A DNA stretch of 64,000 nt from Oopsacas minuta (taxonomy: Eukaryota; Animalia; Porifera): positions 1,862,058 to 1,926,057 of the forward strand of contig JAKMXF010000111.1 in NCBI GenBank assembly GCA_024704765.1, in the 5' to 3' direction. The notes beneath the pieces are model-generated. The model saw only the letters and a list, made by a program, of their open reading frames with translations, did not search any database and was not told the origin of the DNA. A program made the position numbers and the translations under genes. Position 1 is the stretch's first letter. The number at the start of each line of letters is the position of its first letter. Below are positions 29,801 to 57,348 of this stretch, in pieces.

Positions 29801-32800
29801 TGATTTGCATTGAGAACAAATGTAATCTCTAGGCGAGTTGTTCTCAAACTTTAAGACTCCATTTCATAATCGTAATGTATATTTGAGGGGTTCTCGATCC
29901 CCTCAAATCAAATTTATTTACTCTGTGATCATCACAATTCAAGGCCACCCCACCTCTCGCGAGCTTCCGCCTGCCTGCAAGTGGCCGATATCTAAGATAA
30001 TACAGTGGAAGTAGGTAATGATGGCCACCCAAGGGACTTGTCAATAGGTTATGTGAGGCGGCCAATATATAAAGTGACCGTTATGTAAAAGTAGTGGCCG
30101 TTATACGTAGACAGGTTTAGTACCAGGAAGGGCCCAAAAATGGTGGCCGCTATACAGAGATTATTATAATTGGAAATCGGAGGGGACTGTTTTGGTGACT
30201 GCAATGTGCAGGTGAACTTTTGTCGACTGTACATGTAACTACGTATCCAGATGTAATATAATAGTTTATGAATTAGAAACGGTGAGCTGAGCGATAAAAT
30301 ATCCAAAATTACAATCTGTGCCCACAGTTTAGTATATTAATTAATTAAATAATATGACACTATCAATTGGCGGAACTATCCTTAGTATATTGTAGTCTCT
30401 CAGTAATTAATATAATTATAACTATTCTATAGTCACTATTATTCAATTCAACAAAAGATAAATATCCACACAAATGGCTACTGCAGAAGTTGATTTGAGT
30501 TTCATAACTCAGATAAAAGAGAGTAGAAAGAAGATTAGAGACTGTTTCAAGCAGTCGCATGAAGCACTCAGACTCAGAGAGAGTATCCTCCTCTCTCGTA
30601 TTGATCAAATCGAAAAAGATTATAATAACAAAACTCAAGAAATGAATTCATTGGTCGAAGTTTTGAACAAAGAAATGACACAAACTACAGAGACTCTCTC
30701 CGCTAATAAACTTGCTGAAACTCACAAACAAATTAATGAACTAACAGCTGAGACAGGCAGTAGCATTGAGTTTGAATGGGACAATCAATTCGAGACTGAC
30801 ATAGAACAGCTAGGGAGTATTAAGCTTAACAGTCAGACTAAAATATTTCCCGCCCACTCCTTCCTTCCTCAAGTGAAGCCTATTATACCTGACTACAAGG
30901 CTAAACAGCTGCCTATTGCTTGTGGCTGTAAGAATGATATACACAAGAAAGTTCCAGGAGAACTGAACTGTCCCAGAGGTATAGCAGTTCTTAACCAAAC
31001 TGGAGACATATACATAGCGGATTATTGCAACCATCGTGTACAAGTATTTAGTAGTAACGGAGACTATCTCTTCATGTTCAGTGAGAAGATGAATTATCCA
31101 GCAGGTATCTGTATATCTCAGAATAAAGTGTTTGTTACACAATGCAACAGTCATTGCATTAATAAGTACGAGCTAGAAGGGAAACTAATCAAGAGTGTTG
31201 GTATTAAAGGGGATGGAGAAGTTCAGTTCTACCATCCAGGGGGTCTAGATGTCTCTGATAGGAATAGCAATGTATACGTATGTGATTATTATAATCATAG
31301 AGTTCAAATCTTAACTCAAGAGCTCAAGTTCCATTCCATGTTAGGAATAAATTTGTTTAAGTATCCATGTGACGTTAAGTTTACAAGAGACAGAGTATCG
31401 GTACTAGATTATAGTGATCCGTGTATGTTTGTGTTCAATTCAGATCACGTTCTAACCAACAGACTGATAACTAGAGGTGTTGGCAAACAAACAAACAAGC
31501 CTTTACGTTTCGACATAGACATAGACTATAACATCATTATGAGTGACTACTATAGTCACTGTGTGTACGTATTCAATCAGGTGGGAGAACAGATACACAA
31601 GTTTGGGAAGGAAGGTCAGGGCATCGGTGAGTTCTATTACCCATTTGGAATAGCACTAGACAACACAGGACACATTATAGTTGTGTGTCAGAAGAATACT
31701 AATTGTCTACAATTCTTTTGAACTTATCTTGCATACATTCATTCATGGCTAATATTTTCTTTATACAATTCGTGTATAACTTTTATTCTTATTCTATTTC
31801 TTATAACTTTTTACAATTATCTTCTTATTCAGAGTTGCCCTGTCACGCAAAATTTCCTGGGCTTAATGTGGTTCGGCAGGACGACTTTTGGTCACCTGAG
31901 CCTGTCTCCCACGTCCCTCTTTAGTTAGCCATATTTGTTCCACCAACCAGTTTTAGCTAAATCGGTCCGTGTAAATATTTTGGACCTATCTATGCAGACT
32001 CTAGATTTACAATGAGTGGTGTTTGGGGGGCCCGAGGGTCTACGCCCCAAACTTGTATTCTCAGGGGCCGTTTTCACCGAGGACTTCTAAGGAAAGGCTT
32101 ACTTGGCTTTTAGAGTTGTCTGTACAGATTTTTATAGATTTAATTAAAAAGCTAGCTCCTATACGTTTTAATAGTCCACCATAAGCCTCTAAACAACGGA
32201 CACTTTGGGATCAGAACCATTGTCCCTTTGTCCGTTATTTATATGTTGACCGTAGACCGGTATTTGGTGGGGCTTTTATGGGAGATCACTGTTGCTAAAC
32301 AAGTCTAACCTGCCTTTAGAATTGTTTATTGATTTTTATGGATTAACACTTTTAAACAAAATAACTAAGCTGTCGGCACAGATTCTAAATTTAGATTTAT
32401 TCCTTGTTAGCGAGGCACGGCTTATCATTGTTGTCCTGTCAATAATTGGGCATATCTCATGTATTTATCATGTTTGGACTATCAATACGAAATTCAGCCA
32501 TCTAGCTGCTATTCGTGGTCTTGATAAAGTTGTTATAAGTCATGACGAATTTCCCGATCTTTGTCTAGTGTGCACTTCATACGCGTAGCTAAGGAGTTGT
32601 TTGCAACCCCTGGATTACTGGTGATGCACGCAATCGCAATTTCTGAATTATTGGGGTTGCTAGCAACCCCAGTGGTAACCCAAAGAGGAAATGCTAGCTA
32701 CGCCTCTGGTGCAATTGCTCAGCACAATTTGGGACCTACCACTAACCTCATGTAGCAGTATAATAGCATTATAACTTATAGAAACAAAATAGAGTGGAAC

Positions 32801-56076: not shown

Positions 56077-57348
56077 ATGGCTAGCGTAGCAGTGAAAAGA
56101 AACTTCATTGAACAAATAAAAGAGAGTAGAAGGAAGATTAGAGACTGCTTCAAGAGGTCACATGAAGCTCTACAACTCAGAGAGAATATCCTCCTTTCTC
56201 GTATTGATCAAATCGAGAAAGATTATAATAGAAAAACTCAAGAAATGCAAGAGTTATTGAAAGCTTTGAATAAATCAAAATCGTTCAATACAAACACTCT
56301 GACTTCTAATAAACTTAAAGCTACTCATCGAGGAATAGAATCACTAATAAATAATCAGATCGAGGAACTATCAGCTGATACAGACAGTAGTATTGAGTTT
56401 GAATGGAACAATCAATTCGAGACTGACATAGAACAGCTAGGGAGTATTAAACTTAGCGGTCAGACTAACATATCTTCCACCCCCACCTTCCCTCCTCAAG
56501 TGAAGCCTGTTGTGCCTGACTACAAGGCTAAACAGCTGCCTACTGCTTACTACTGTAAAAAATCTACAGGCAAGAAAGCTCCAGGAGAATTGAACTGTCC
56601 CAGATCTATAGCAGTACATTACCAAACCGGAAATATTTACATAACTGATAAGTGTAACGATCGTGTACAAGTATTTACCAGTAATGGAGACTATCTCTTC
56701 ATGTTCAGTGAGAAGATGAACAAACCAACTGGTATCTGTATATCTCAGAATAAAGTGTTTGTTACACAATCGGATGGTAATTGCATTAATAAGTACGAGC
56801 TAGAAGGGAAACTAATCAAGAGTGTTGGTAGTGAAGGGAATGGAGAAGCTCAGTTCAACTATCCACGGGGTCTAGATGTCTCTGATAGAAATAGCAATGT
56901 GTACGTATGTGATTCTAGCAATAAAAGAGTTAAAATCTTAACTCAAGAACTCAAGTTCCATTCCATACTAGGAATAGGCTTGCTTAAGTATCCATTTGAC
57001 GTTAAGGTTAGAAGAGACAGAGTACTGGTGCTAGATAGAAGTGATCCGTGTATGTTTGTGTTCAATTCAGATTACGTTCTAACCAACAGACTGATAACTC
57101 TAGGTGTTGGCAAACAAACAAACAATCCAAATTGTTTCGACATAGACAGAGACCATAACATCATTATGAGTGACTACAGAAATCACTGTGTGTACATATT
57201 CAATCAGGAAGGAGAACAGATACACAAGTTTGGGAAGGAAGGTCAGGGTATCGGGGAGTTCTATTGCCCATATGGAATAGCACTAAACAACACAGGGCAT
57301 ATTATAGTTGTGTGTCAGAAGATTACTAATTGTCTACAATTCTTCTAA
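56077..57348 (+). CDS. Intronless coiled-coil + NHL propeller protein, subfamily 2, copy F
   Basis: 423-aa ORF, close paralogue of 30474-31721. Confidence 0.9.
   Translation: MASVAVKRNFIEQIKESRRKIRDCFKRSHEALQLRENILLSRIDQIEKDYNRKTQEMQELLKALNKSKSFNTNTLTSNKLKATHRGIESLINNQIEELSADTDSSIEFEWNNQFETDIEQLGSIKLSGQTNISSTPTFPPQVKPVVPDYKAKQLPTAYYCKKSTGKKAPGELNCPRSIAVHYQTGNIYITDKCNDRVQVFTSNGDYLFMFSEKMNKPTGICISQNKVFVTQSDGNCINKYELEGKLIKSVGSEGNGEAQFNYPRGLDVSDRNSNVYVCDSSNKRVKILTQELKFHSILGIGLLKYPFDVKVRRDRVLVLDRSDPCMFVFNSDYVLTNRLITLGVGKQTNNPNCFDIDRDHNIIMSDYRNHCVYIFNQEGEQIHKFGKEGQGIGEFYCPYGIALNNTGHIIVVCQKITNCLQFF

Follow-up and report, generated by a model that had tools for sequence, protein, structure and literature searches.

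Introduction

NHL propellers are familiar from a small number of developmental regulators in each genome, where they are conserved modules that bind RNA or protein. Fish finTRIM and primate TRIM5alpha proteins, which have a coiled coil and a C-terminal B30.2 (SPRY) domain, are known for multigene expansion and for variation in the binding loops. In this study we describe a family of NHL propeller genes of the glass sponge Oopsacas minuta, two members of which, gene E (positions 30474 to 31721, plus strand) and its paralogue F (56077 to 57348, plus strand), lie in a 64,000-nucleotide stretch of contig JAKMXF010000111.1 (positions 1,862,058 to 1,926,057 of the forward strand, assembly GCA_024704765.1), hereafter called the window. 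The finTRIM and TRIM5alpha proteins differ from the sponge family in that they carry B30.2 and not NHL, possess a RING finger and a B-box, belong to vertebrates and have shown or inferred antiviral roles.

The propeller of the sponge proteins resembles that of the TRIM-NHL proteins (TRIM71/LIN-41, TRIM2, TRIM3, Thin/TRIM32, Brat, Mei-P26 and NHL-2) in sequence and fold, with profile E values of 1e-52 to 1e-27, and, as in that group, the NHL domain of the sponge proteins follows a helix that is predicted to be coiled-coil-like. The NHL propeller's top surface is defined by the b-c and d-a loops and serves as the RNA-binding platform in Brat (PMC4015489), and in LIN-41 an RNA hairpin is bound in a pocket on the surface that the authors call upper (PMC5908797). 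The face that varies in the sponge family, by predicted topology that of the b-c and d-a loops, would correspond to the known ligand (RNA) face of the TRIM-NHL proteins. However, the sponge proteins lack RING, B-box and filamin domains and are encoded by single-exon genes for about 400-420 amino acids. Moreover, whereas flies possess three TRIM-NHL proteins, C. elegans four and mammals five (PMC4015489), the sponge family numbers dozens to hundreds of copies per genome, has a top face that is hypervariable where theirs is conserved, and appears to evolve in concert.

In evolutionary mode the closest described system is the nwd/HNWD family of Podospora anserina (HET-E, HET-D and HET-R). Exchange among its members keeps the DNA of the WD40 repeats highly conserved, and about four positions per blade, on the interaction surface of the propeller, show positive diversifying selection (PMC4986451). 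The sponge family shares this combination of concerted evolution and selection at a few top-face positions per blade. It is alike in pattern but is not a member of the fungal family: its repeats are NHL and not WD40, whereas the nwd proteins carry NACHT and effector domains, vary in repeat number and have a known role in allorecognition. In addition, homogenisation in the fungus occurs also among the repeats within one gene, whereas the six blades of the sponge propeller are mutually dissimilar and exchange takes place between equivalent blades of paralogues.

Lineage-specific NHL expansions are also suggested by mollusc clusters of NHL and B-box-NHL hypothetical proteins in the ESM Atlas (340-560 amino acids, 62-308 members, some of them with no other domain), which are language-model look-alikes only (score 0.86-0.91). 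Our literature search found no account of hypervariable or expanded NHL families, nor of NHL proteins in Oopsacas or Aphrocallistes, and the Aphrocallistes genome paper does not mention NHL. We consider it probable that the sponge family is germline-encoded and lineage-specific, that its scaffold is homogenised by exchange between paralogues, and that about 20 residues on the top face of the propeller are diversified by selection.

Domain composition and predicted fold

Both E and F are intact, single-exon open reading frames (ORFs); E encodes a putative coiled-coil and NHL propeller protein of 415 amino acids and F a protein of 423 amino acids. The Pfam NHL family (PF01436) matched E in four stretches (94.3 bits, E = 1.9e-27) and F at 80.4 bits (E = 4.9e-23), with a cut-off of 20. 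In the Pfam search of E and F only NHL and related propeller families were matched, with no NACHT/NB-ARC or effector domain. A RING finger gave no Pfam match at E ≤ 0.1 in either protein; likewise, neither showed a zf-B_box match or a cluster of Cys and His within residues 1-150. The start methionine is conserved among paralogues and leads directly into the N-terminal helix, and inspection by eye revealed no apparent signal peptide in E or F.

In the AlphaFold2 (AF2) model of E, residues 8-90 form a long helix, which a linker of low confidence joins to a six-bladed propeller at approximately residues 153-415. The helix (30495-30743, plus strand) was delimited by DSSP on this model, where its predicted local distance difference test (pLDDT) score is about 70-80, and it could form a coiled-coil stalk; we regard it as probably a dimerising coiled coil. 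The propeller was modelled with 23 strands in six blades at pLDDT 85-97. The top Foldseek matches of the model were the NHL domains of TRIM71/LIN-41, Thin and TRIM2/3, with target-normalised template modelling (TM) scores of 0.80-0.87; the range was 0.75-0.87 with Brat included and 0.72-0.87 over the TRIM-NHL relatives as a whole. When the PDB was searched with a profile of the family, the E values were 1e-52 to 1e-36 for the NHL domains of TRIM2, TRIM3, Thin and TRIM71 and 1e-27 for that of Brat. On the evidence of the profile and the predicted model, the propeller of E and F is closest in sequence and fold to the TRIM2/3/32/71 type. E and F thus combine a putative coiled coil with a TRIM-type NHL propeller minus the ubiquitin-ligase part, and because the defining RING and B-box are absent, they are not TRIM-NHL proteins.

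Framework and hypervariable columns

The word-based protein search detected 725 family proteins at E ≤ 1e-10. The best 120 of these 725 (at least 68% identity) comprised 24 proteins of O. minuta and 96 from the ENA assembly ERZ25071281, and the closest relatives of E were all found in the O. minuta assembly. The O. minuta and ERZ25071281 sets were reciprocally monophyletic. The ERZ25071281 assembly holds at least 96 family members, three of which lie within 10 kb of one another (locus L009, on a contig of 1,214,663 bp).

To avoid circularity, the hypervariable (HV) columns were defined from the 96 ERZ25071281 proteins only, as those with an entropy of at least 2 bits. This yielded 20 columns, all of them in the propeller, which correspond to E residues 166, 184, 185, 208, 210, 224, 225, 254, 256, 272, 273, 297, 313, 342, 344, 359, 360, 389, 391 and 406. 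The 20 codons form 12 loop clusters that span 30969 to 31691 in E, and the homologous codons of F (alignment columns 174-414, each F residue being the E residue plus 8) span 56596 to 57318, both on the plus strand. E and F differed at 15 of the 20 HV columns, compared to 38 of the 243 others (odds ratio (OR) 16, p = 4e-8). There are two clusters and three to four HV residues per blade, and the clusters have recognisable motifs: x-x-P-x-G ahead of strand a, in the d-a loop, and D-x-x-N-x-R between strands b and c. An earlier interpretation of the window, made from the DNA letters alone and referred to here as the sequence-only reading, had described an alternation of framework and variable loops in E and F. 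We found this pattern to be family-wide, and it was recovered also when the HV sites were taken from the independent protein set.

The same alternation is apparent at the DNA level. The codon alignment of E and F is identical at 1055 of 1245 bases (84.7%), and the proteins share 74% identity. Among the 136 codons that differ, 100 are nonsynonymous, and 44 of these change at two or three bases. Between the replacements there are eight perfect runs of 43, 28, 35, 40, 51, 33, 26 and 38 nucleotides (nt). Six of the runs reach at least 33 nt, compared to a mean of 1.8 after the codon columns had been shuffled (p = 0.002), although the longest run alone is unexceptional by the same shuffling (p = 0.14). 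The sequence-only reading was accurate in these details: the 50-nt block that it had quoted occurs exactly at 31154-31203 in E and at 56781-56830 in F (plus strand), inside the 51-nt perfect run, and the ten residue swaps that it had listed are all at aligned positions and have the codons it gave for them (e.g., TAT/AGA and TAT/AAA). The interleaving of framework blocks with multi-base swaps is therefore real and exceeds chance expectation. Outside the coding sequence (CDS), the homology of E and F stops at the stop codon, and about 61% identity extends across approximately 140 nt upstream of the start codon.

The face of the propeller on which the HV residues lie was assigned from the strand order of the AF2 model and the published loop definition, that is, from topology and not from coordinates. 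Sixteen of the 20 HV residues were located in d-a or b-c loops or at the adjoining strand residue, and the remaining four are each the second residue of a strand a. At the same time, none of the 72 positions in the a-b and c-d loops of the bottom face was an HV site (hypergeometric p = 4e-4). In the predicted topology the HV residues therefore lie on the top face, in agreement with the single variable face that had been proposed from the sequence.

The composition of this face is skewed as well. Tyr accounts for 17.4% of residues at the HV columns and for 3.8% in the framework, an approximately 4.6-fold enrichment that bears out the Tyr-rich face of the sequence-only reading; Trp accounts for 4.1% and 0%, respectively, and Cys, Arg and His are enriched too. 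Overall, Tyr, Asn, Cys, Arg, Ser and His are abundant among the HV residues, and Lys is scarce. In E, Tyr occupies 9 of the 20 HV positions, which is the joint maximum among the 120 proteins, and in F 4 of 20; the remark that E has Tyr at most of its variable spots was thus slightly overstated, although E does stand at the top of the family in this respect. The comparison of such a face with antibodies is an analogy only.

The sequence-only reading had also held that two distant NHL subfamilies diversify the same surface, with that of E and F showing the pattern independently. The other subfamily, here called the second, is represented in the window by genes A, B and C, which are all intact and show approximately 27-33% identity to E. 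We aligned both subfamilies and compared the 20 HV columns with those at which A, B, C and a fourth copy, L002:5785, vary. Any variation in the second subfamily was seen at 14 of the 20 HV columns versus 53 of the 233 others, and at least three different residues were seen at 7 of 20 versus 7 of 233 (p about 2e-5; OR 8-17 over both tests). The variable columns of the two subfamilies do coincide; however, "independently" can be retained only in the sense of parallel change at homologous positions, since the subfamilies are related and are not separate inventions.

Rates of change, estimated as Nei-Gojobori counts of nonsynonymous (dN) and synonymous (dS) change, differed strongly between the two classes of codons. 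In the E/F comparison dN was 0.76 at the HV codons and 0.08 in the framework, while dS was 0.18 in the propeller framework and 0.40 in the coil. Intact O. minuta paralogues were compared in 91 pairs (14 genes, namely E, F and a further 12 at loci L001-L008), and in every pair dN at the HV codons exceeded framework dS, with medians of 0.73 and 0.16, respectively. The HV difference between paralogues (0.769) equals that of random draws from the column compositions (0.769), so that the HV residues are saturated; even the closest paralogue pair differs at 55% of them, and some loop states recur among non-sister paralogues.

Putative targets of the variable face

From this pattern we infer that the faces of different copies may bind different targets, whether RNA or protein, self or non-self. 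As a tentative suggestion, the family could represent an inherited intracellular recognition repertoire of glass sponges, in which dozens to hundreds of putative coiled-coil-NHL proteins would act, in the manner of restriction factors, as sensors or binders of foreign RNA or protein from viruses, transposons or symbionts. The alternative that the same evolutionary mode serves endogenous regulation, with the copies divided among the sponge's own mRNAs and proteins and with no recognition of non-self, appears unlikely to us, though it fares better than the other explanations considered below. It has in its favour that the closest solved relatives (TRIM71, Brat and TRIM2/3) bind cellular RNAs, and that the proteins, which by eye have no signal peptide, look cytoplasmic. 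However, dN persistently in excess of dS at a predicted binding face, saturation of the HV residues, assembly-specific clades that lack one-to-one orthologues, and numerous broken copies are all typical of repertoires driven by conflict and atypical of conserved regulators; the TRIM-NHL proteins are few per genome, as noted in the Introduction.

Exchange between paralogues

The homogenising exchange proposed by the sequence-only reading finds support in several kinds of evidence. In a tree built from the coil (codons 1-150) the deep clades are supported at 100/100, and E falls into one of them and F into another. The propeller framework, by contrast, gave a star-like tree in which F is paired with L005:1815, a member of the other coil clade. 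In approximately unbiased (AU) tests the coil clade was rejected on the propeller data (p = 0.007) and the propeller pairing on the coil data (p = 5e-76). The pairwise homoplasy index (PHI) test was significant for the coil, the propeller and the whole gene (p ≤ 0.002), including the propeller alone (p = 0.002). Median dS within O. minuta was 0.37 for the coil but 0.16 for the propeller framework, and in the three neighbouring ERZ25071281 genes of locus L009 it was 0.65 and 0.13, respectively, so that propeller dS is 2-5 fold lower.

The flanks of the genes are mosaic as well. Paralogues are mostly homologous for no more than 100 nt beyond the CDS. By its CDS, E is closest to L001:10001 (93.8% identity), and homology between the two stops precisely at the stop codon; the 3' flank of E has its match, 518 nt in length, in a different paralogue, L001:14008.

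The second subfamily provides a further case. An inverted duplication in the window (8968-11966 versus approximately 47880-50945), which on its sequence is very recent, is 98-100% identical in the flank. Genes A (11884-13080, minus strand, 398 amino acids) and C (46762-47961, plus strand, 399 amino acids), whose propeller and 3' flank are near-identical, are reached by its halves. Inside the genes, however, A and C are less alike, with 88-96% identity for the propeller and 62% for the coil, in which region homology ends. In the propeller 7 codons differ by silent change only and 29 are nonsynonymous, and in the coil the numbers are 27 and 53. This drop in identity within the duplication indicates that A is a chimera with a divergent coil, and that the propeller differences between A and C are mostly replacements. 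Taken together, the conflict between the trees, the AU and PHI tests, the dS contrast and the mosaic flanks support conversion or recombination between paralogues.

An explanation with no conversion would assume a recent burst of paralogues and constraint on silent sites, due to codon use or RNA structure, that keeps the propeller DNA uniform. The star-like propeller tree is what a burst would yield, and between the two assemblies, too, propeller dS is about half of the coil value (0.34 versus 0.68). However, a burst combined with constraint does not account for deep and fully supported coil clades that the propeller data reject and vice versa, for a PHI signal inside the propeller alone, for a gene E whose CDS and 3' flank have their closest matches in different paralogues, or for the visibly chimeric A within an otherwise 98-100% identical duplication. 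We therefore regard this explanation as improbable.

Probable selection at the hypervariable codons

Since conversion can reset the dS of the framework, dN at the HV codons was also set against the dS of codons no more than three positions away, which are expected to share the same history. The ratio was 6.4 for E and F (bootstrap 95% interval 2.4-33) and ranged from 2.4 to 8.7 in seven disjoint paralogue pairs. The selection claimed by the sequence-only reading is thus supported, with dN at the HV codons several times the dS of adjacent codons. At the same time, silent change near the HV codons was similar to that elsewhere (0.087 versus 0.091 for E and F, and 0.100 versus 0.091 over all pairs). 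The absence of any marked rise in silent change beside the HV codons indicates that selection fits the data better than local hypermutation, and hypermutation was rejected as the main cause for this reason.

It might be argued that the HV residues are simply unconstrained, drifting at the neutral rate while purifying selection holds the scaffold, with no selection for diversity. Loop residues of propellers often tolerate change, the HV residues seem saturated, with little phylogenetic signal in them, and the E and F flanks are unalignable, so that the pair could be old. Drift of this kind, however, predicts that dN at the HV codons equals the dS of codons with a shared history, which was exceeded 6.4-fold in E/F and in seven of seven disjoint pairs. 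Moreover, it leaves unexplained why 72 loop positions of the bottom face are devoid of HV sites and why the composition is not random but skewed to Tyr, Trp, Cys, Arg and His; we consider neutral drift of the loops quite improbable. The least probable explanation by our assessment is a dedicated mechanism that targets mutation to the loop codons, be it hypermutation in somatic cells or micro-conversion templated by pseudogene cassettes. It would fit the two- or three-base differences at 44 of the 100 replaced codons, the broken or partial copies near other family members (with one fragment in the window) and the recurrence of certain loop states in non-sister paralogues. However, the silent sites adjoining the HV codons are no more changed than elsewhere, and all the variation observed is germline variation that distinguishes fixed loci. 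Moreover, E and F are flanked by no repeats or template arrays, and multi-base changes are expected anyway where dN is near 0.8.

Proposed mode of evolution

We propose, therefore, that diversifying selection and exchange between paralogues act on the same genes. O. minuta would possess a large family of intracellular proteins that consist of a long N-terminal helix and a six-bladed NHL propeller and are devoid of RING and B-box. Recombination or gene conversion, along with purifying selection, would keep the propeller scaffold nearly uniform, silent sites included. Diversifying selection, in turn, would keep about 20 residues at the d-a and b-c loops different in every copy. The outcome would be one scaffold with many putative binding faces rich in Tyr, Trp, Arg, Cys and His, i.e., a repertoire of propellers.

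Several points count against this proposal. The placement of the variable face relies on the strand topology of a predicted model and not on measured coordinates, and the clades compared in the AU tests were picked after the trees had been seen. The low dS of the propeller could partly reflect constraint on silent sites, as it is about 2-fold under that of the coil between assemblies as well. In addition, Nei-Gojobori counts are rough when applied to recombining paralogues. At the HV codons themselves dS is as high as 0.85, a value based on 9 silent sites only; it is probably an artefact of averaging the pathways through multi-base codon changes, and the dS of neighbouring codons was used in its place because so few silent sites and so many multi-base codons make it unreliable. 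Finally, given that the non-coding flanks of E and F are unalignable, the true age of the pair may exceed that suggested by the framework dS, and some of the divergence at the HV sites may have been retained from older diversity and not have newly arisen.

Other features of the window

The window has a base composition of about 35% GC, that of AT-rich eukaryotic DNA, and its ORFs are sparse. The second subfamily is represented, besides A and C, by the intact gene B (19717-20916, minus strand, 399 amino acids) and by an NHL fragment of about 124 codons (23170-23544, minus strand), which blastn aligns to A, B and C at 87-90% identity and tblastn to residues 164-287 of A at 81%; judged by its sequence, the fragment is probably a piece of a pseudogene. 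Gene C shares a 90% cluster with the O. minuta protein KAI6649907.1. Broken or shortened copies of the E/F subfamily were found near intact ones at L001 (3204-4817), L002 (12695-13971) and L006 (4716-5608 and 17533-18806); their DNA is 84-89% identical to E, and their gene models are split or encode 224-370 amino acids.

Gene E is flanked on both sides by minus-strand ORFs with leucine-rich repeats (LRRs). Those at 27819-28361 and 34282-34827 have Pfam LRR_6 matches to repeats of the RNI type, and the ORF at 33851-34213 is LRR-like by eye; E could thus sit inside an intron of an LRR gene. In a search for signs of a retrogene, neither a poly(A) tail nor a target-site duplication was seen after the stop codons of E and F. 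Approximately 440 nt past the stop codon of F, the plus-strand ORF at 57788-58366 shows a weak match to propellers of the WD40/EML type, under the Pfam cut-off.

Gene A is adjoined by a hAT-type transposase (13996-15881, plus strand) that extends across two overlapping ORFs, the first with a zf-BED domain and the second with a hAT dimerisation domain; transposase-like genes adjoin family members also in L002, L003/L008 and L009. The halves of the inverted duplication carry a seven-transmembrane gene of the secretin type (PF00002; ORFs 9766-10881 and 48963-50198), and between them lie an ankyrin-repeat ORF (38064-39812) and an ORF with a Ribosomal_L1 domain (40505-41524), both on the minus strand and ordinary-looking. 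On another O. minuta scaffold (L007, 4680-7528), Argonaute/Piwi and eIF4E genes are located between two NHL genes of the E/F subfamily, which is probably a coincidence.

Conclusions

The fold known from conserved developmental regulators appears in this family as a fixed scaffold with a fast-changing face, present in dozens to hundreds of genes. The pairing of concerted evolution with diversifying selection marks also the propellers of fungal NOD-like receptors (NLRs) and other repertoires of non-self recognition. To our knowledge, almost nothing is known about the defence systems of the glass sponge, an early-branching and syncytial animal. The family offers a natural library of top-face variants for the study of NHL ligand specificity. 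If the faces bind foreign molecules, a new class of domain would be added to the known routes to immune-type diversity, and if the family is indeed a recognition repertoire, it would be the first variable receptor system based on NHL and would parallel, in an animal, the WD40 NLR system of fungi.

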